This document shows, piece after piece, positions 4,976-57,977 of a stretch of 64,000 bases of DNA. The stretch covers positions 124,001 to 188,000 of IMG/VR virus record IMGVR_UViG_3300043418_000072; one strand, written 5' to 3'. The notes beneath the pieces are model-generated. The model was given only the letters and a program-made list of their open reading frames with translations, ran no database searches and was not told the origin of the DNA. The position numbers and the translations under genes were made by a program. The stretch's first letter is position 1, and each line of letters starts with the position of its first letter.

Positions 4976-5232
4976 TATGCGCCACCTCTAAGAATGTACA
5001 TAGTAACGTCTTGGCTGTCAATAACACACATTTGCTCGCCGTACTTGTTATGCTCACCGCTGTACCATGAACGTTTTTCGACGTTGAGGATTTCAACCTT
5101 AACCATCTTAGGGTTAATCTTAACTACCTTGGCGATCTCCATGCCATTATGGTGCGCCACTGCAACGCAATCACCTAGTGCAATATCCCGACCTAGTTTA
5201 TCTTTGTGTACCGGAATTTCTTTAGCTGCCAT
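4975..5232 (-). CDS. Hypothetical protein (SH3/KOW-like)
   Basis: DKLGRDIALGDCVA pattern. Confidence 0.6.
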   Translation of the reverse strand: MAAKEIPVHKDKLGRDIALGDCVAVAHHNGMEIAKVVKINPKMVKVEILNVEKRSWYSGEHNKYGEQMCVIDSQDVTMYILRGGA

Positions 5233-5527
5233 GTGATGCTTTCAACATTTCAATTAGTTTTTCGGGTTTGACAATCTCGTGGACCATTTTGTGATCAGTC
5301 GGGATGCAACGGTATTCAATTACCTCCCACTCGCTCATGTCAGTGGCTCCATAATATTTGTTAATATGGCTTGTAATGTGGGCACGGAGTTTACCCAGGG
5401 TGTCCCAAGTCTTGCCACCTTTTTCGACCCAATAGCTGTTGTTGCCATCTGCGTTGGCATAAGTGCCGCCTTTGCTATAACGCTTGGTTACTCGGTGGCG
5501 TATTTTAAAAAATGTTTGTTCACTCAT
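5222..5527 (-). CDS. Hypothetical protein
   Basis: Start moved to MSEQTFFKIRH. Confidence 0.65.
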   Translation of the reverse strand: MSEQTFFKIRHRVTKRYSKGGTYANADGNNSYWVEKGGKTWDTLGKLRAHITSHINKYYGATDMSEWEVIEYRCIPTDHKMVHEIVKPEKLIEMLKASHGS

Positions 5528-5727
5528 CTGCGTTTCCTTTTGGCATCTGCTTTGCCAGTGAAATACCCAACTAACCAAAAACATATTGCAGTCCACAATA
5601 TCCAACCCACCATGTAACTTACTGGTACCATCATTGATCCACAACGTGATAATTAGAAAAGGGGTAAGTTTCTTGTAACCATTGTAACATATCTTCCTTA
5701 AAAGGTAAACGAATATTATCGTATTTG

Positions 5728-23742: not shown

Positions 23743-24282
23743 TTACATACGTCTATTAATAGCGTCCCAGTCCATAATTCGCCAAATGCTGTCCAGGTAT
23801 TTTGCTTTGTTTGTGCTGTAGTCGTTGGTGTAGGCATGTTCCCACATATCAACTAACAGTGCAATGTCTGTGCGTTTAGTGTGATTACGTATAGTTTTAA
23901 TTGCGCCGCTCTTGCTTAGATAAATCCAGCCAGAGCCTTGCATCTTTAATGCTTCTTCTTTGAAGTTCTTTTTAAAATCCACAAATGATGTGTGGTGACG
24001 ATTGATTAGATCTAAGATATGCCCTTTAGGTGCAATAGAACGCGGGGCTCTGAACTGACTAAAGAATATACCATGTAGATAGGCCCCTGCTTCGTTGAAG
24101 CTTTTGTCGCCCTCGCCTTTGTTGTATCGATCTACGTAACCCTTGTATAGTTTCCCGTAATGTGTGTCAATAGTGGCGCTGCTCATAACTGGTGAGAGTG
24201 CAGTGTGACTGTAGGGCAGTTTGATCTGCTCTAATTCGGTTGGCGATTCTAATAGAGTTAAGGTATTACGGATGGAGTGCAT
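23743..24282 (-). CDS. sod: Fe/Mn superoxide dismutase
   Basis: LPYSHTAL, TH, YLHG, GSGW, DMWEHAY; ATAAATA at 24287-24293. Confidence 0.9.
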   Translation of the reverse strand: MHSIRNTLTLLESPTELEQIKLPYSHTALSPVMSSATIDTHYGKLYKGYVDRYNKGEGDKSFNEAGAYLHGIFFSQFRAPRSIAPKGHILDLINRHHTSFVDFKKNFKEEALKMQGSGWIYLSKSGAIKTIRNHTKRTDIALLVDMWEHAYTNDYSTNKAKYLDSIWRIMDWDAINRRM

Positions 24283-48003: not shown

Positions 48004-48180
48004 TCAAGTATTAGTAAACTTTAGCGCAAAAAACGTGCTCATAGGACCATCTTCGATAGTAACTACATATCCCGGCCATTCCCGTTTAAACGGCCAGTGC
48101 TTTACTTTGGACTCTTTGAGAGCTTGCCTGACTGAGTTTATATCTTTATACGGAACTTTTAGTTCAATCGTCTTCTTCAT
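48004..48180 (-). CDS. W-cassette-like protein
   Basis: TFFALKF. Confidence 0.65.
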   Translation of the reverse strand: MKKTIELKVPYKDINSVRQALKESKVKHWPFKREWPGYVVTIEDGPMSTFFALKFTNT

Positions 48181-48739
48181 CGTCAAATCCTTCATTGCCG
48201 CGCATCTCGATATGAATGTATTGGTTATCATAATCCTTATGGTATGCTTCGTTTGCATTTAGCACACGATACTGGTTGGGATACTTGAGTGCTAACATTA
48301 GCATATCATCTCTATTTGTGATCTCGGTAATGATGTACTCAGTGCCACATGCACCGTCTACGTGTTTGATCATGCCATGTTTAAACTCATTGTCGATAAT
48401 AGCAGTGGTTAAATTACTGTGCATAGGCACAATGATGCGATCAAATGGCAAGTGCGGTGTAGGTAAGTTACGATCTAGTATTCCTAATTTGGATAACGTT
48501 GCACAGTTATCTTGGTCAATGGTTAGCTTACATCGCTTGAACTTGATGCTGCCTTTGGTACTGGGATTATCGGGTGTTTCCTTGGTGCTCCAAGGGATTT
48601 CTGCTGTTACGTGATGCACGTAAAAAGTGACTCCGTGTGATTTAATGACCCACATGGGAATGGTCGGATCTGTAAGATGTCCCTTATTGAAGTGGAACAC
48701 TAATTCCTTACATTGGTAGTTGATCTAGGCTTGTGACAT
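48164..48739 (-). CDS. Hypothetical protein with in-frame TAG at codon 5 (candidate read-through gene)
   Basis: AAAGGAG-6nt-ATG TCA CAA GCC TAG ATC AAC..., in frame with the 178-aa track ORF. Confidence 0.65.
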
Positions 48740-48753
48740 GAGTTTCTCCTTTG

Positions 48754-49047
48754 TTATGTCGTTGTAATATTATATATGCCTTTAAGGCCGTCTGTCAATT
48801 CATTTAGACGATCTCGATAGCGAAGTTGTAGATATGTGTACTGCGCTGGGGTAACATTTCTAAACACCACACGATCAAGGTGATGAACAACTCGTTGTTC
48901 GGTTGCCATATCGCGCCACCCACTGTCAAACATACTGGACTCGGGTTTGAGACCATGTGTGTTAACTAGGTCAAAGTCCATATCGGTTTCGTTAAGAAAC
49001 TCTACATCATCTGAATTAAGGGCGTTGCGTAATAAGTAATCAGTCAT
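48754..49047 (-). CDS. W-cassette-like variant
   Basis: YLQLRY; similar to 33725. Confidence 0.6.
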   Translation of the reverse strand: MTDYLLRNALNSDDVEFLNETDMDFDLVNTHGLKPESSMFDSGWRDMATEQRVVHHLDRVVFRNVTPAQYTYLQLRYRDRLNELTDGLKGIYNITTT

Positions 49048-49980: not shown

Positions 49981-50265
49981 TTACTCGTTGTCCAAAATAG
50001 CGAAGATTTCTTCTTCCTTGATTACCAGCAGAGTTTCGCCCTTAACTGTTACAGTAATTGTGGCAGATGGATTGTACATCACGCGATCACCGACTTGCAC
50101 TGTAAGTGGGATGGGTGCGCCATCTTTAACGGGCTTGCCTGTGCCTACTGCTACAACTTCGGCTTCGTAAACCGGAGTTACTGAAGTAGTTAGCATAATG
50201 CCACCTGCGGATTTTGTTTCGGGTTCAAGTTTCTTGATTAGAACTCTGTCGTGCATTACTTGCAT
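49981..50265 (-). CDS. groES: Co-chaperonin GroES
   Basis: HDRVLIK, SAGGI, VVAVGTG, VQVGDRV, EEEIFAI. Confidence 0.95.
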   Translation of the reverse strand: MQVMHDRVLIKKLEPETKSAGGIMLTTSVTPVYEAEVVAVGTGKPVKDGAPIPLTVQVGDRVMYNPSATITVTVKGETLLVIKEEEIFAILDNE

Positions 50266-50280
50266 GTTATTTCCTTATTA

Positions 50281-50394
50281 ACCATAGTTAAGTACACTGC
50301 CGGAGTAGCAAGAACCAACTTGCCCACTTTGTTCCGTCCTGGATAGATTACTCTACTGGTTCCCAGGCAAACCGCTAATGTACTTAACTATGGT
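50281..50394 (-). ncRNA. Structured tRNA 3' trailer closed by a perfect 16-bp inverted repeat
   Basis: ACCATAGTTAAGTACA (50281-50296) / TGTACTTAACTATGGT (50379-50394); internal GNRA hairpin. Confidence 0.6.
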
Positions 50395-50465
50395 GCGCTA
50401 GGCGGGAATCGAACCCGCGATTCAGAGGTTTAGAAACTCCTGCTATACCATTTAGCTACTAGCGC
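50391..50465 (-). tRNA. tRNA with CUA anticodon (amber suppressor), CCA encoded
   Basis: 75-nt cloverleaf GCGCTAG...TT-CTA-AA...TTCGATT...CTAGCGC-A-CCA. Confidence 0.9.
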
Positions 50466-50473
50466 ATTTTGTA

Positions 50474-50502
50474 ATTATAACAAGAGCACTGATGTTAGTC
50501 AA
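50474..50502 (-). promoter_or_regulatory. sigma70-type promoter for the tRNA
   Basis: TTGACT-17-TATAAT. Confidence 0.85.
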
Positions 50503-50517: not shown

Positions 50518-51921
50518 TTATTTCATGCTGTTAGCACGAACTTGTTCGAAAGTGATTTCGTTAAACAATGCACCGTTCTGGAAAACAGTTTGCAATGCTT
50601 CAGTCCAACCACCAATGCCTTTGTCGCTCCAACCAGTAGGGGCTTGCACACTTGTTGAAAACTCGCCACCACTGTTGGTCCACAACTTAACACGGCCTTT
50701 GAGTGATGCTTTGCCACTGTCAGTGATGGGGTCTTTGTAAACATCAACCCATTCACCGTTGACACATGCACTGGAACATTTCATAGCCCACTTCTGTGTA
50801 TCACGATCAATAGCTTGCAGCAAAGCACCACCCATACCAAATGCAAAGTTATCTGCTGACCAACCTTGGAAATCAACCATAGTGCGCAAGATGCTTTGGA
50901 TGCTAACAGTGTTGATACCATCGCCCCAGATCATGCGTACATTGTTGAGTACCTTGTAGCCCTTGTCATTGGTAGTGTATCCAAAGCCTTCTGCAAGAAT
51001 TGCAATCATCTTTGGCATGACTTCAACAGGATCACCTGAGTCAGGACGGATAACAACTGTGGCACCTGAATCAATCACTTGCTGTTTCAAGTCACCAGTA
51101 CTCCACATTTTACATGCTTCGTAGATGTTGTAGCTGTCACTAACAACTGCAACAATACCGCCTGGCTTACCAAACTGTGTGACCATGTTGCTGTAGGCGT
51201 TCAGTTCACCTGCACGACCCCAACTAGTGATAGTACTGTGCTCGGCAGCTGGAATTGAAAAACCTGCGATGCCAGCATTGTAATATTCGCGAGCGTACAG
51301 TACACCAGTAATAGTGTCGGTACCCATGAAGTTGACCAAGTGGGCCGCACCCCCAATACCAGCACTCTCCATTGAAGATACACCACGAGCACCAAAATCG
51401 TGCAGTTTAAAACCGATAGTAGTAGGATCACCAGATTTCTCCAAGTATTCTTGCAAGATGTTTTTAATGTACTTGCTTTGTGTTGAGACTGTAGTTGGGT
51501 ACCAGACTGCACGAAGCAATGGAGTTTCCAACCATGTGGTTAAACCGTGGCACTTGGGGTCAGTGTTTTCGATTGTGACCAGTGCGTTTCCAACTGGGAC
51601 AACAGTGCCTTCTGGTACGGCTTTAATGACCACGGGCAAGTAGCCGTTGTGTGCTTCGACGATGTAGTCCCACATGGTGCGGTCGAATGGTTCGCCGTGT
51701 GCTGTGAGGATTTCTTCTGCGATGTCAACGTCGGCTTTTGTAATTGGGTCAAGTAAATACTCCTTGAAGAAAATTTGCAGTCCAACAACTTGTGTGAATG
51801 TGAATTTGCCGCCGCGGGCTGCAATGTAGCTGAATACATTAGTAGTGCCAGCTGGGTATTGAGGCGCCATACTAACTTTGTAGCTGTCAGTATTGAGAAT
51901 GATGTTTTTAGAGAGTTTCAT
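50518..51921 (-). CDS. nadV: Nicotinamide phosphoribosyltransferase
   Basis: TDSYK, LHDFGARG, AAEHS, VSDSY, IRPDSG. Confidence 0.95.
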   Translation of the reverse strand: MKLSKNIILNTDSYKVSMAPQYPAGTTNVFSYIAARGGKFTFTQVVGLQIFFKEYLLDPITKADVDIAEEILTAHGEPFDRTMWDYIVEAHNGYLPVVIKAVPEGTVVPVGNALVTIENTDPKCHGLTTWLETPLLRAVWYPTTVSTQSKYIKNILQEYLEKSGDPTTIGFKLHDFGARGVSSMESAGIGGAAHLVNFMGTDTITGVLYAREYYNAGIAGFSIPAAEHSTITSWGRAGELNAYSNMVTQFGKPGGIVAVVSDSYNIYEACKMWSTGDLKQQVIDSGATVVIRPDSGDPVEVMPKMIAILAEGFGYTTNDKGYKVLNNVRMIWGDGINTVSIQSILRTMVDFQGWSADNFAFGMGGALLQAIDRDTQKWAMKCSSACVNGEWVDVYKDPITDSGKASLKGRVKLWTNSGGEFSTSVQAPTGWSDKGIGGWTEALQTVFQNGALFNEITFEQVRANSMK

Positions 51922-52461: not shown

Positions 52462-52679
52462 TATAACTCCACTCTTTCAAAGTAAATCTTGGCAAAGCCC
52501 ATGGGGCTTGTTGCACGGCGTTCAATTTGTAGATACAAACGTGTCGGAGTATCCTCTAACACATGGTGCACCACAATCTGATCCATGGTATCGTTAAACA
52601 CTTGAGTCCTAACTTGTTCAGCTAAGAACAGTTGTTGACTACGCCGGGGTTGATAGTTGCTCTTGTGCATCTTAAACAC
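52461..52679 (-). CDS. Hypothetical protein
   Basis: Coupled ORF. Confidence 0.6.
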   Translation of the reverse strand: MFKMHKSNYQPRRSQQLFLAEQVRTQVFNDTMDQIVVHHVLEDTPTRLYLQIERRATSPMGFAKIYFERVEL

Positions 52680-53691
52680 CTACCGCCCATTGGACCATAT
52701 CGTAGTGGTCTTCAAAACACTCGTCGCTACGCACTTCTGCAATAGGAACCCAACGTGCTTTCTCTGCATCGTCACTGCCTTTTACTTTAGGCAATGCACC
52801 ATCAGGCAATTCAATCTTGTAGCAATGAGTAATGATACGACCACGTGGTGAACGATCAACAGCATCAAACACACGGTTGCCCGTAATGCTACCACGCAAC
52901 ACTGGCTCAGGTACTTTGATACCAGTTTCTTCACGGAGTTCGCGAATAGCTGCATCAAGTACGGTCTTGTCGGTGCTGGCGTTAACGTAACCACCAGGCA
53001 GTGCCCACAAGCCACGACCTGGCTCAGCACGGCGTTTGATCATAAGCACATGGCCTGAGCAAATTACTGCGGCATCTGCTGTGCTAAAGATTGGAGGGTA
53101 CTTCAAGCTGGCATATTGCTTGTTGTGTTCAATCAAGAATTCACGCTCACGGATAATCTGTGCAAATTCCTCAGTCTTACGAAAATTCATCAAGAAGTCA
53201 TAAGTTGATTGAGGTACAACATTCTTAATAAAGTTGCTGTTGAAGGTCCAGTTAAAGAACAGGTCACGAATGTTCACTGCACTAAGTGGTTCAATTTCCT
53301 CTACATCAACATAGCCCCATTGGGGGAACATGTCCAAGTAGAAACTTGATTCGTCTTTCTTGTGACCAATGATGGCAGTTTTAGTACCCAGGATTCGATA
53401 CTTGCTGACAATACCTTGCACACGAACTGCCCACGCTTGGTCGTTGTACATTGTATCAATGTTTTCTTCAATGTGAATACTCATTGCAAGACCACTTGTT
53501 GCAGCCTTAATCATTTGAGCACGTTCGGCACTGGTGAAGGGGTTTTTGTAAGTGCGGGGTTGAGCAGCTGAGCCTGTGATAATTACCAGATTGTCGGTCA
53601 ATGCTGTGGCTCGCTTGATAATCTCTAAGTGAGCATTGTGGAAGGGTTGAAAACGTCCGATGAGGACTAGTGTTCCGTATTCTTTAGACAT
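52672..53691 (-). CDS. nadM: Bifunctional NMN adenylyltransferase / Nudix ADPR pyrophosphatase
   Basis: GRFQPFHNAH, KNPF, Nudix box PGG...RELREETG. Confidence 0.95.
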   Translation of the reverse strand: MSKEYGTLVLIGRFQPFHNAHLEIIKRATALTDNLVIITGSAAQPRTYKNPFTSAERAQMIKAATSGLAMSIHIEENIDTMYNDQAWAVRVQGIVSKYRILGTKTAIIGHKKDESSFYLDMFPQWGYVDVEEIEPLSAVNIRDLFFNWTFNSNFIKNVVPQSTYDFLMNFRKTEEFAQIIREREFLIEHNKQYASLKYPPIFSTADAAVICSGHVLMIKRRAEPGRGLWALPGGYVNASTDKTVLDAAIRELREETGIKVPEPVLRGSITGNRVFDAVDRSPRGRIITHCYKIELPDGALPKVKGSDDAEKARWVPIAEVRSDECFEDHYDMVQWAVGV

Positions 53692-54618: not shown

Positions 54619-55587
54619 TTATTGTTTGCTTTTGATTAGTGATTGATGTGCAACCAACTGCTCTCTGAGTTGTGCAAATTGCGGATGCACTAGAATGTCC
54701 AATGCAGATTCAATGCTACGTAACGCGGTGTTGAATAATGCAGGCGCTAGATTGTAAATGGCTAGATATTTTGGACTGTTGGCAGTATGTGCAACAAAAG
54801 TACAGCGGGGATTGTTTTCAACTATCTCAACAAAGTACTTGGCCAACGAGTGTATGTCAACGATTGAGATATTTGTGAGAGTGATATGAAATTTTATTTG
54901 AACTGGCAAATCCACAAACTTAGTAATGTTATCTTGTACTATGGACCAGACTGTGCCCGTACGTTGCAGTTCTGCTGTTCGTCCTACTCCATCAATGCTG
55001 AGATTTAATGTTGTATTAAATTTCAGCAGCTTCTCAACAAATATTTGATTGTACACGCTTGCATTGGTGTAGACTCGCAAGTTAATGTCTGTTCTGTCTT
55101 TAGCTATCAAGTGATCTAGCAACTGATAGTAGTGCTTAATTATCATTGGCTCGCCACCAGTTAATGTAAGGAACTTTAGATTCTCTGACATGGTAAGTAT
55201 CTCGGCCCAGTCAGAATCTGAAACGGTATTAACTGAGCCATTGATGAGAGAGCTGTTTTCGCTATTGCACATCTTGCACTGAAAATTACAAAGATTGCTT
55301 GCTCTCAGCTCCATATAATCGAGTTGGTCAACGGTAGTTTCACCATATAGTGCAAGTAGGTGCTGTCTTATACTTTGCAGCCCTGCGTCTTCTAGTGACT
55401 TGCATCCTCCGCAAGTTTCGTCAAACTCGTTATTTAAAAACTTGGTTTTTAAATCTTTAAGGTAATCACTATTTCTAAACTCTACTGGACTCATGCTAAA
55501 CTTCTTAGAACTAATGCAGCACACAGCCGATTGATCGACATGGTAGAACAAAGATCGCCACGGTGCAGGACAAAAGAATTTTTTCAT
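54619..55587 (-). CDS. Radical SAM protein with N-terminal SPASM/twitch-like Cys cluster
   Basis: CNFQCKMC, TGGEPM, YTN, SIDG. Confidence 0.9.
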   Translation of the reverse strand: MKKFFCPAPWRSLFYHVDQSAVCCISSKKFSMSPVEFRNSDYLKDLKTKFLNNEFDETCGGCKSLEDAGLQSIRQHLLALYGETTVDQLDYMELRASNLCNFQCKMCNSENSSLINGSVNTVSDSDWAEILTMSENLKFLTLTGGEPMIIKHYYQLLDHLIAKDRTDINLRVYTNASVYNQIFVEKLLKFNTTLNLSIDGVGRTAELQRTGTVWSIVQDNITKFVDLPVQIKFHITLTNISIVDIHSLAKYFVEIVENNPRCTFVAHTANSPKYLAIYNLAPALFNTALRSIESALDILVHPQFAQLREQLVAHQSLIKSKQ

Positions 55588-55605
55588 AGAATAGAGTGTG
55601 TAATT

Positions 55606-55631
55606 AGAAAATAGGGGCCGAAGCCCCTATT
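55606..55631 (-). terminator. Terminator after tmRNA
   Basis: AATAGGGGC-TTCG-GCCCCTATT-TTCT. Confidence 0.85.
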
Positions 55632-55632
55632 A

Positions 55633-55953
55633 CTATTTCCTGTTGCAAGGCATAGCTGCCCCGGAAGCCTTTATCAGGCAACCATTAGAAACTGTGAGTC
55701 GTTTGCATTTACTTTTTTTGCTTCTACGGCCGGGAAACCCCAACCCTACGGCTTCTGCTTTGCCGAGCTGTCCACTTGTTTACTTGTTGCCCTGTCGAAA
55801 CCATGGCAGGCCCATCAAAAACATACTAAGCACTTTACACCGATATCGTTTCTTAAGTTCGCCCACGATGTATCGAATAGTACGCTTTTGGTGGACCTGG
55901 CGGGAGTCGAACCCGCGTCCAGAACACTTTTCTCTTTGCTTCATACAGCAATA
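55633..55953 (-). ncRNA. ssrA: Circularly permuted two-piece tmRNA; tag ANDSQFLMVA
   Basis: Acceptor piece ends ...GGGTTCGACTCCCGCCAGGTCCACCA (55889) before coding piece GGGCCTG... (55813); G3-U70; tag 55674-55706; ends approximate. Confidence 0.9.
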
Positions 55954-55980
55954 ACTTATATTATAGCACAAGACTATAAT

Positions 55981-56367
55981 TTAACGACCTGTAGTTGTCC
56001 AATCCAGCACAACTTCATCGGTGGTAGCATCTCGTAATTGGTAACGGCGTTCAATTCCTGATGCTTGCTGAAAAGAAGCAACAGTAGTGGACTCGCCATC
56101 GACATGTGCTTGAGCTTGATTTTCTAACGCCAGTTCGTCGAAACATTTGTTAAACTGCTCAACTGATTCAAACATCATAGTTACTGTAGTGACTACAGAT
56201 CCATCAGGCATGTCAGCTCGTGTAGTGACATTTAACTCAGATCCGGGTGCGCTATACTTTGCAATTATTGCATCACGTGCATCATACACATGCTTGAATT
56301 CCGGGCGGTGTAGTGGTCTAACTGCCCCAGCTGGTGTAGTAATTTCTTTAATATACTTGATCATCAA
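55981..56367 (-). CDS. Hypothetical protein
   Basis: TAAATA at 56384-56389, GGAG RBS. Confidence 0.75.
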   Translation of the reverse strand: MMIKYIKEITTPAGAVRPLHRPEFKHVYDARDAIIAKYSAPGSELNVTTRADMPDGSVVTTVTMMFESVEQFNKCFDELALENQAQAHVDGESTTVASFQQASGIERRYQLRDATTDEVVLDWTTTGR

Positions 56368-56395
56368 ATTCTCCTATATGCTATATTTAGCCAAG

Positions 56396-57249: not shown

Positions 57250-57368
57250 ACCATGAATCCCCAAACAATAATGTTCATACCAATAAACACACCAAGCAAG
57301 AACACACTTACCTTTTCAAGCATTATGCTGCCTCCAACATGTTAGCTGGGAACAAGATAAATAAATAC

Positions 57369-57977
57369 ATGTTTAACTCCAGTAAATACACAAAAATTTA
57401 TTATAACATAATCAAACGAGCTTTTTCAAGATCGATAATTGGTTATACCGAAAAACACCACATCATCCCACGAAGCATTGGTGGCAACAACAAACGATCT
57501 AACATTGTAGCCCTGACTGCAAAAGAACATCGTCTTTGTCATTTGCTGTTGACTAAAATGGTTATTGATCCAGCGCATAGAAGTTCTATGTATCGTGCAG
57601 CTTGGTTCATGAGTAACCGAGTTTTGTTAGGTGTAAGCAAAGGATCATGCTATCAACAATTAAAGGAAGAGTTTGACAAACTTAACCGATCTCGTGTAGT
57701 TACTAACGAAACAAAACAAAAAATACGAGACAAGCGAGCACTACAAACAAACATATCTAACCAATACCTTTCAGGTAAATTAACTGAGTCGCCTCGCAAA
57801 GGAATACCAAATAAAAAGACTTCAGACGCACTTGCTGGACGAGTTATAACTTGGGGAGAAAAACTGTCTGAAACTGCTCTTACCCGTACTAAATGTTCGT
57901 GCATAAAATGCAAAAAAGTAGTTACAGTTGGATACAATGGAGACCGTCACTTTCTTACTTGTTTACTCAACCGCTGA
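57369..57977 (+). mobile_element. Free-standing HNH homing endonuclease with NUMOD3-like tail
   Basis: EKHHIIPRSIGG.N..SN...LT.KEH..CH; ATAAATA at 57357-57367; opposite strand to neighbours. Confidence 0.85.

Follow-up and report, generated by a model that had tools for sequence, protein, structure and literature searches.

An in-frame amber codon at the start of a phage gene is conserved alongside a suppressor tRNA, suggesting an amber-gated gene

The window analysed here is a 64,000-nucleotide stretch of the IMG/VR virus record 3300043418_000072, and the gene of interest lies on its minus strand. The upstream gene stops at a TAA (48756-48754) and is followed by a Shine-Dalgarno (SD) sequence, AAGGAG (48751-48746), a 6-nt spacer and an ATG (48739-48737). 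The ATG is followed by three codons (TCA CAA GCC), an in-frame TAG (48727-48725), eight codons (ATC to TTA) and a GTG (48700-48698) that a standard gene caller takes as the start of a 178-aa open reading frame (ORF) ending at a TGA (48166-48164). All of these elements are in one frame. Read through the TAG, the full coding sequence (48164-48739) comprises the ATG, three codons, the TAG as codon 5, 186 sense codons and the TGA, and the predicted product is 191 aa with one residue inserted at the TAG. A 58-aa ORF downstream on the same strand (48004-48180) has an ATG (48180-48178) that overlaps the last 17 nt of the gene, and the equivalent gene with the same overlap is called in three of the homologous loci we collected (L001, L003 and L004; L numbers designate individual loci). 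We infer from this arrangement that the 58-aa ORF is a candidate for translational coupling to the gene upstream.

ARAGORN and Rfam (66.7 bits) both identified a tRNA with a CUA anticodon (50433-50431) at 50391-50465 on the minus strand, 1652 nt upstream of the ATG. It has an encoded CCA end, G1-C72, C2-G71 and G3-C70 pairs, and A73. A sigma-70-type promoter (50474-50502, minus strand; TTGACT, 17 nt, TG-TATAAT; 11 of 12 consensus matches) precedes the tRNA, with its -10 element ending 8 nt before the first base of the tRNA. A second promoter, which matches the sigma-70 consensus perfectly (48769-48798, minus strand; TTGACA, 18 nt, TATAAT; 12 of 12), lies inside the 3' end of the gene upstream of the ATG, with its -10 element ending about 30 nt before the ATG, and its TATAAT is also present in L001. 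Both promoters are consensus matches only.

The original prediction, that this TAG is an in-frame amber codon and the only internal one noticed, was confirmed. A scan of both strands of the window for an SD, an ATG, 1-8 codons and any of the three stop codons followed by at least 100 open codons returned this site and no other. On the minus strand, stops are TGA in 63 cases, TAA in 52 and TAG in 5, and no long ORF is interrupted by TAG; a possible second in-frame TAG at 56368-56370 was rejected because its upstream segment is covered by a better ORF in another frame. The same ATG TCA CAA GCC TAG ATC is present in independent assemblies from other samples (L001-L004, L008 and L090), which rules out a read error. 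A recently inactivated gene is likewise refuted, since the TAG is conserved in the relatives described below with an intact ORF under purifying selection downstream.

To determine whether the TAG has been maintained, we compared homologous loci from IMG/VR contigs, ENA/Logan/NCBI assemblies and MAGs, down to 46% identity, together with the cultured Rhizobium phage RHph_I1_18. These phages are T4-like and some are jumbo. Among 76 distinct homologous contexts, 69 have an SD, an ATG, 1-8 variable codons and a TAG just before the conserved I-E-Y-x-C-K-D-x-V-F-H-F start of the domain, and in the common register the TAG is invariant in 52 of 52 distinct sequences. An SD lies 6-14 nt from an ATG (6-11 nt in 64 cases) in 65 of 65 TAG-bearing contexts. 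In contrast, the leader (M-S-Q-A at 48739-48728 in the window) is conserved in neither sequence nor length, being 2-9 codons long including the ATG, with 12 different codons at the position before the TAG. Codons +1 to +12 after the TAG show synonymous change with conserved residues (Ile, Tyr, Cys, Lys, Asp, Val, Phe and His), and this stretch is therefore translated in this frame. The TAG is also old, as it is shared by clades more than one substitution per site apart on the protein tree.

These comparisons bear on where translation starts. One possibility is that this is an ordinary gene that starts at GTG 48700, with the upstream ATG and TAG being meaningless intergenic sequence. GTG is a legal start, here with AGGA only 4 nt upstream, and many database entries are called this way or from Met24. 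However, the homologous Val codon is GTG in 47 loci, GTC in 20, GTT in 13 and GTA in 4, so that it is a non-start codon in 37 of 84 loci (44%). Since, in addition, the eight codons upstream of it are conserved at the protein level and the 53-nt "intergenic" stretch contains the SD-ATG, we regard this possibility as very unlikely.

A second possibility is that the SD-ATG-TAG segment is a separate leader ORF of 2-9 codons, similar to the bar minigenes of lambda, and that ribosomes terminate at the TAG and reinitiate at once on the adjacent codon, which would make the tRNA irrelevant. In favor of this, the leader is short, unconserved and well initiated, and the codon after the TAG is almost always an Ile codon (ATT 46, ATC 15 and ATA 3 of 66), AUU probably being a rare bacterial start, as in infC. 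However, any stop codon would serve such a mechanism, yet TAG is used in 69 of 69 cases and TAA or TGA never, and reinitiation does not explain the near-universal same-strand linkage to a tRNA(CUA). RHph_I1_18 and L096 have AAC and AAG after the TAG, which are not start codons. Finally, TAG-less members read the same N-terminus straight from an ATG (L088, ATG AGT GCA ATT AAT TAT; also L029, L081, L097 and L098), and Ile is kept there (M-S-A-I-N-Y), so it belongs to the protein. Reinitiation is thus an unlikely explanation. The original prediction proposed asking which residue replaces the TAG in homologues, but the Q that appears there in database entries is only a code-15 translation of the same TAG. 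Genuine TAG-less homologues have Ala, Thr, Lys or nothing at that position, where the Thr, Lys and gap are our reading of the N-termini.

The most consistent neighbor of the gene is the tRNA. ARAGORN found a tRNA(CUA) on the same strand, 100-3500 nt upstream (once 605 nt downstream), in 62 loci, and a profile search found 12 more, 9 of which were checked for CTA anticodon loops. The remaining loci lack upstream sequence, except L022, which bears the TAG but shows no tRNA within 3.7 kb upstream, and the TAG-less L097. In RHph_I1_18 the tRNA starts 12 nt after the stop of the gene. Often the tRNA ends about 10 bases before the SD, behind a sigma-70-type promoter, and compact cassettes of promoter, tRNA, SD, ATG, leader and TAG are seen in L050, L031 and L016. 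Of 50 distinct tRNA(CUA) upstream regions, 66% have a promoter matching at least 10 of 12 positions in this place, against 0.6% of random positions. Clustering of neighboring genes found no other conserved partner, the next best being present in 27 of 85 loci.

The tRNA family looks functional, with compensatory changes in all four stems among 45 distinct members and an invariant acceptor end. Position 31-39 is a U-C mismatch in the window copy and mostly C-A or A-C across the family, which might make it a weak suppressor. The acceptor end (G1-C72, A73) does not appear to resemble E. coli tRNA-Gln, and similarity to co-resident phage tRNAs was uninformative as to isotype (best match tRNA-Met(CAT), at a low score). 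Although ARAGORN labels the tRNA "Pyl", it is a canonical cloverleaf with GG in the D-loop, a 5-nt variable loop and a GGTTCGATTCC T-arm, which is not the architecture expected of tRNA-Pyl, and no pylS or pylBCD domains appear among the 40 window ORFs scanned (31 of them at least 150 aa) or the conserved neighbors. Initiation at the amber codon by an initiator-like tRNA was also rejected: G1-C72 is paired in 45 of 45 members rather than carrying the C1xA72 mismatch expected of an initiator, pair 31-39 is mostly mismatched, and an SD-ATG lies upstream of the TAG.

The presence of a tRNA(CUA) raises the question of whether these genomes are recoded, or becoming so, with this gene merely the first of many to acquire an in-frame TAG. 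TAG is depleted as a stop, at 5 of 120 in the window and 8.8% across loci although it makes up 24% of off-frame stop triplets, which matches the pre-recoding state proposed previously (10.1101/2021.08.26.457843). However, coding density under code 11 is already 0.75-0.95 (median 0.89) in the window and its relatives. It rises only from 0.909 under code 11 to 0.927 under code 15 in the window, and the gain is at most about 0.06 in all but one of 57 loci. No other gene has an internal or N-terminal TAG within the 64-kb window, which is part of a genome of about 240-354 kb. Real TAG stops are mostly followed by T (41%), whereas the TAG at this site is always followed by A. A single TAG that is ancient and fixed at one site across deep clades is a stable end state and not a transition. 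The comparative evidence supports the inference in the original prediction that there is no genome-wide recoding here, and that the gene is made only when the phage suppressor is active, although readthrough itself is inferred, whereas its fallback, an early step of recoding, is not supported by the sequence examined and appears very unlikely.

We also looked for the function of the protein. Pfam, PHROGs and a PDB sequence profile gave nothing. AlphaFold models were confident (pLDDT 85.5 for the full length and 90.3 for the N-domain). The protein has two domains, a beta-rich N-domain with the F-H-F-N-K motif and an alpha/beta C-domain with an acidic tail. However, Foldseek found nothing in the PDB for either model (best E 0.03 and 0.7) and only uncharacterized phage proteins in BFVD. 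Two ESM Atlas searches gave only sub-threshold leads, including an "RF3 fragment" cluster at 0.61 and 0.43 that we treat as chance. An exhaustive profile search found 142 cluster representatives with no informative domain fusion (entries P0202, P0203 and P0253 look like chimeras or insertions). A megablast search of the region against GenBank phages found no match, and a scan of genome contigs returned only mis-binned MAG contigs, so that no host was identified. Full-text literature searches found no description of this cassette.

Taken together, the anatomy, its deep conservation, the linkage to the tRNA and the standard code elsewhere lead us to propose, with good but not complete confidence and without direct evidence of readthrough from proteomics or ribosome profiling, that this is a programmed amber-gated gene and that the tRNA(CUA) is its dedicated decoder. 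In the proposed mechanism, host RNA polymerase transcribes both parts from strong sigma-70-type promoters, and ribosomes start at the SD-ATG at 48739 and reach the UAG after four codons. If release factor 1 (RF1) wins, a tetrapeptide is released and the remaining 560 nt, and probably the overlapping downstream ORF, stay untranslated. If the processed and charged phage tRNA(CUA) wins, the UAG, in its UAG-A context, is read as an amino acid and the 191-aa protein is made. Output would thus depend on mRNA and suppressor tRNA together, a translational AND gate or delay, although the timing is inferred. When both come from one promoter, as in the compact cassette that we take to be ancestral, this is a coherent feed-forward loop, and such a loop gives a delay, a threshold and no leak. 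In the window, however, the tRNA and the gene are 1.65 kb apart with separate promoters, so co-transcription is not assured there. Also, at least four TAG-less lineages (L029, L081, L088 and L098) keep the tRNA, which may therefore have another or additional role.

The purpose of such a gate is conjecture. Because four of the five TAG-less full-length (two-domain) lineages still keep the tRNA next to the gene, our weak guess is that the protein acts in the translation or tRNA sphere. A more speculative reading, which we consider possible but unlikely, is that the cassette is a self-contained natural translational switch and the long-sought client of "orphan" amber suppressors in standard-code phages, and that, in addition, the F-H-F-N-K protein itself acts on UAG decoding (on RF1, the ribosome or the suppressor tRNA). 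The pair would then form a feedback loop that sets how much UAG readthrough the infected cell experiences, a viral analogue of prfB autoregulation built on a new protein fold.

Suppressor tRNAs are common in large phages that do not use an alternative code, and their targets have been an open question. The standard-code jumbo phage XacN1 carries a tRNA(CUA), and its authors read through 18 annotated TAG stops and stated that they could not find any target (PMC5852040). The design described here would escape such a search, because the piece before the TAG is only 2-9 codons long and is never annotated. XacN1 gave no match to this protein in a tblastn search of the phage collection. In public databases the gene is either truncated at an internal Val or Met or silently translated with code 15, and gene callers should look for SD-ATG-(1-8 codons)-TAG next to a tRNA(CUA). 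In stop-codon-recoded phages (crAss-like, Lak, Agate and others), a phage tRNA(CUA) decodes in-frame TAG within a standard-code host, TAG is depleted as a true stop, and suppression has been proposed to time late and lysis genes (10.1101/2021.08.26.457843). In those phages, however, tens to hundreds of TAGs are scattered through structural and lysis genes and coding density under code 11 is low, while here there is a single TAG at the extreme N-terminus of one gene family, physically coupled to the tRNA, a family which that paper does not describe. If readthrough occurs, it would show that stop-codon suppression can serve as a dedicated one-gene switch rather than a genome-wide code change.

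Among cellular systems, the bldA tRNA-Leu(UUA) of Streptomyces appears similar in that a dedicated tRNA controls translation of a very small set of genes carrying its otherwise avoided codon, but bldA probably reads a rare sense codon and acts in trans on scattered genes, whereas here the codon is a stop codon in competition with RF1 and the tRNA and target form one cassette in a virus. The in-frame UGA with +1 frameshift of prfB and the AUU start of infC also appear to use an early codon in the mRNA to read out the activity of a translation factor, and in those two cases the product is probably itself the factor being sensed. The architecture is the same as that of a synthetic "leak dampener" engineered in E. 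coli, in which one input drives both an amber suppressor tRNA and an mRNA with early amber codons so that output needs both (PMC7969014). The cassette described here appears to be a natural counterpart of that circuit, conserved across a phage lineage, and its compact promoter-tRNA-leader module might be useful as a part for genetic-code-expansion work.

On the minus strand, the upstream gene ends at TAA (48756-48754) and is followed by AAGGAG (48751-48746), six bases, an ATG (48739-48737), the codons TCA CAA GCC, and TAG (48727-48725). Eight sense codons then lead, in the same frame, to GTG 48700, which opens the 178-aa ORF ending at TGA 48166-48164. ARAGORN and Rfam both find a canonical tRNA with anticodon CTA at 50391-50465 on the same strand; although such tRNAs can be annotated as tRNA-Pyl, the canonical cloverleaf contradicts a pyrrolysine system. 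When both strands of the window were scanned for an SD, an ATG, 1-8 codons and any stop followed by at least 100 open codons, this site was returned and nothing else. Stop codons on the coding strand are TGA 63, TAA 52 and TAG 5, and the five TAG-terminated genes meet a second stop within 1-21 codons. One apparent second in-frame TAG, at 56368-56370, is explained by a better ORF in another frame. The original prediction, which described an in-frame amber codon at position 5 of a gene 1.7 kb from an amber suppressor tRNA and no other internal TAG, is therefore accurate in its description.

To determine whether the TAG is conserved, we examined relatives of the protein, which has 921 database relatives and no Pfam domain. 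Most relatives are 186-193 aa long and begin upstream of the Val encoded by the GTG. DNA for relatives was fetched from ENA, Logan and NCBI assemblies, from IMG/VR (80 loci), from GenBank phages and from GTDB genomes (6 MAG contigs). Two IMG/VR contigs of 240 and 354 kb are 100% identical to the query protein, so the source is a jumbo phage. In 70 + 6 distinct N-terminal contexts, 69 have the same design: an SD 6-14 nt (all but one 6-11) before an ATG, a leader of 2-9 codons (ATG included) with no conserved sequence, a TAG, and then the conserved start of the domain, I-[EN]-[YF]-x-C-[KR]-[DE]-x-V-F-H-F. In the 52 distinct sequences of the commonest register the TAG is invariant, while the preceding codon takes many forms. 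The following twelve codons show the signature of translated sequence, with ATT/ATC/ATA for Ile, TAT/TAC, TGT/TGC, AAA/AAG, GAC/GAT, four Val codons, TTT/TTC and CAC/CAT. This pattern contradicts a start at the GTG, as does the finding that the Val that a code-11 gene caller uses as the start is GTG in only 47 of 84 loci. Annotation of the family is inconsistent: some entries are translated with code 15, others are truncated to the Val (written as M), and many instead begin at Met24 (database proteins P0001, P0002, P0010 and others; P0004, P0005 and others; P0151, P0154 and others). The Q shown at the TAG position in the closest database proteins is merely a code-15 translation of the same TAG.

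Seven contexts lack the TAG. Five of these read the same N-terminus directly from an ATG (the homologous loci L029, L081, L088/L089, L097 and L098), and two (Atu_ph07 and Phosso) carry the domain behind a roughly 100-aa helical extension. On a protein tree, three of the TAG-less full-length forms (L029, L081 and L089) are scattered inside the TAG-bearing radiation, which implies several independent losses from a TAG-bearing ancestor, although the root is a midpoint and L081 sits on a long branch. TAG-less members have Ala, Thr, Lys or no residue at the site, so the identity of the inserted amino acid probably does not matter.

The gene is closely linked to the tRNA. ARAGORN finds a tRNA(CUA) on the same strand in 62 of the first 84 loci, usually 100-3500 nt upstream of the gene. 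A profile built from those tRNAs finds twelve more that ARAGORN missed (L013, L014, L017, L018, L020, L021, L036, L037, L038, L066, L074 and L075), and the nine we inspected have YUCUAAA loops, ACCA ends and atypical D-loops without the usual GG. Surveys that report suppressor tRNAs in only a fraction of phages may be undercounting for this reason. Three or four of the six MAG loci add further cases. The loci left without a tRNA have almost no upstream sequence, except L022 (3.7 kb upstream) and L097 (1.9 kb upstream, and TAG-less). In the cultured Rhizobium phage RHph_I1_18 (MN988519), a minimal version of the gene, unannotated in the GenBank record, lies between EVB91_024 and tRNA EVB91_023 (about 1484-1731 of locus L085, taken from this phage) and ends 12 nt before this tRNA, which is annotated "tRNA-Pyl(cta)". 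This version is M-S-E-F-M-TAG-N-E-S-C-R followed by the N-domain only. No protein-coding neighbor comes close to this degree of linkage, the best being present in 27 of 85 loci, and those neighbors (gp23, gp20, gp21, Cpn10, AhpC, CMD) identify the carriers as T4-like phages. An alternative possibility is that ribosomes terminate at the TAG and reinitiate at the Ile codon that follows. This would work with any stop codon and needs no tRNA, yet only TAG is used, two members have Asn or Lys after the TAG, and the tRNA is nearly always present.

The tRNA family has 45 distinct sequences and shows compensatory changes in all four stems. G1-C72, C2-G71, G3-C70, A73 and an encoded CCA are invariant in all or all but one of the 45. 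The paired G1-C72, together with the universal upstream SD-ATG, contradicts initiation at the amber codon. Position 31-39, the base pair closing the anticodon loop, is a C-A or A-C mismatch in 35 of 45 distinct tRNAs and Watson-Crick in only 2; in the window copy (50436 and 50428) it is U-C. A conserved weak 31-39 pair may tune suppressor efficiency. The tRNA(CUA) of the window also matches the tRNA(CUA) of cluster C mycobacteriophages at 84% over 50 nt (Mycobacterium phage Catera, NC_008207, 1478-1551 of locus L092, and 95 cluster C records), and both share the GCG...CGC-A acceptor end. In GenBank the mycobacteriophage tRNA is annotated variously as tRNA-Arg, tRNA-OTHER or tRNA-Pyl. It is followed by a tRNA-Met(CAT), as in several of the loci studied here (L023, L028, L032, L033 and L083), but no F-H-F-N-K gene is found in those phages.

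Two-thirds of the distinct tRNA genes have a sigma-70 promoter matching at least 10 of 12 positions with its -10 element ending 3-14 nt before the tRNA, against 0.6% for random positions. In compact cassettes (loci L050, L031 and L016) the order is promoter, tRNA, 7-25 nt, SD, ATG, x, TAG and ORF, and the two parts are then very probably one transcript. In the window, three genes have come between the two parts (Cpn10, a 308-aa ORF and a 108-aa ORF), and each part has its own promoter by consensus match: TTGACT-17-TG-TATAAT before the tRNA, and a perfect TTGACA-18-TATAAT whose -10 element ends about 30 nt before the ATG.

The rest of the genome, of which only the 64-kb window was scanned for other in-frame TAGs, appears to use the standard code, as judged from greedy ORF coverage, which for the window is 0.909 under code 11 and 0.927 under code 15, with a similar pattern in 57 loci. 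Across 1304 distinct ORFs of at least 80 aa, TAG makes up 8.8% of stops but 24% of off-frame stop triplets. True TAG stops in these phages are most often followed by T (41%), whereas the gate TAG is followed by A in every case. In E. coli a 3' A appears to favor amber suppression (Bossi; Miller and Albertini, 1983), and the difference fits selection for strong termination at real stops and weak termination at the gate.

Pfam scans of the larger ORFs of the window show an early or auxiliary region that holds PhoH, a clamp-loader ATPase, DNA ligase, NAMPT and NMNAT-Nudix, Fe/Mn superoxide dismutase, a radical-SAM protein and an amidoligase. A cluster of auxiliary genes around the cassette (50518-51921, 52672-53691, 23743-24282 and 49981-50265, minus strand; 5080-5657 in the related locus L001) includes NAMPT, an NMNAT-Nudix fusion (NAD+ salvage), Fe/Mn superoxide dismutase and Cpn10 (GroES), and relatives carry rubrerythrin and rubredoxin, AhpC and a CMD/AhpD-like protein. 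Together they suggest a redox or oxidative-stress theme. A 171-aa ORF (16507-17022, minus strand) matches only a piece of the DNA polymerase III alpha NTPase domain and may be a split or fragmented gene. The region also encodes a two-piece (permuted) tmRNA (55583-55998, minus strand) that matches the Rfam betaproteobacterial and permuted models (110 bits each), with the tag peptide ANDSQFLMVA, and an HNH endonuclease ORF (57339-57977, plus strand) lies on the opposite strand near it. The tmRNA hints at a betaproteobacterial host. A ribosome-rescue RNA in the same genome as an amber suppressor may not be a coincidence, since readthrough of true TAG stops needs cleaning up.

The simplest account of these observations is a dedicated decoder and client pair. 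In this account, translation starts at the ATG, RF1 and the charged phage tRNA(CUA) compete at codon 5, and only the tRNA lets the ribosome continue into the 186 remaining codons. An N-terminal position makes failure cheap, since only a peptide of 2-9 residues is released, and it also leaves the rest of the mRNA untranslated. In the window, we infer that this probably includes a 58-aa ORF (48004-48180, minus strand) that overlaps the end of the gene by 17 nt, an overlap that is also called in the related loci L001, L003 and L004; if this ORF is translationally coupled, the amber gate would control it too. With tRNA and mRNA driven by the same promoter, or the same promoter class, the circuit is a coherent feed-forward AND gate, which is the same design as a published synthetic "leak dampener" (PMC7969014).

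The protein has no recognizable relative of known function. Its two AlphaFold models are confident, yet they match nothing in the PDB, and in BFVD they match only uncharacterized phage proteins. The N-domain (residues 1-80) is the conserved core and carries many invariant polar residues: H11, N13, K14, H16, D19, K28, H38, T47-K-E-T50, N53 and T56-K-G-S59. It occurs alone, with the C-domain, or behind a helical extension. In two family members the N-domain is cut short and continued, into a zinc-finger/endonuclease-like sequence in P0203 (325 aa) and into an SNF2 helicase fragment in P0202 (251 aa); these may be homing-endonuclease insertions or assembly chimeras. At least four TAG-less lineages keep the tRNA beside the gene, which hints that protein and tRNA may be functional partners and not only gate and key.

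The gate itself is well supported by comparative evidence, although readthrough of the TAG is inferred and the purpose of the gate is unresolved. The literature that we could search does not describe this cassette, and one paper states that the targets of the CUA suppressors of a standard-code jumbo phage could not be found (PMC5852040). The nearest known phenomenon is stop-codon recoding in gut phages, where suppressor tRNAs are proposed to time late genes (10.1101/2021.08.26.457843); that involves many TAGs and a code-11 annotation that falls apart, and neither is true of the window. In its logic, the cassette appears to resemble bldA and TTA codons in Streptomyces, and the early sensor codons of prfB and infC.
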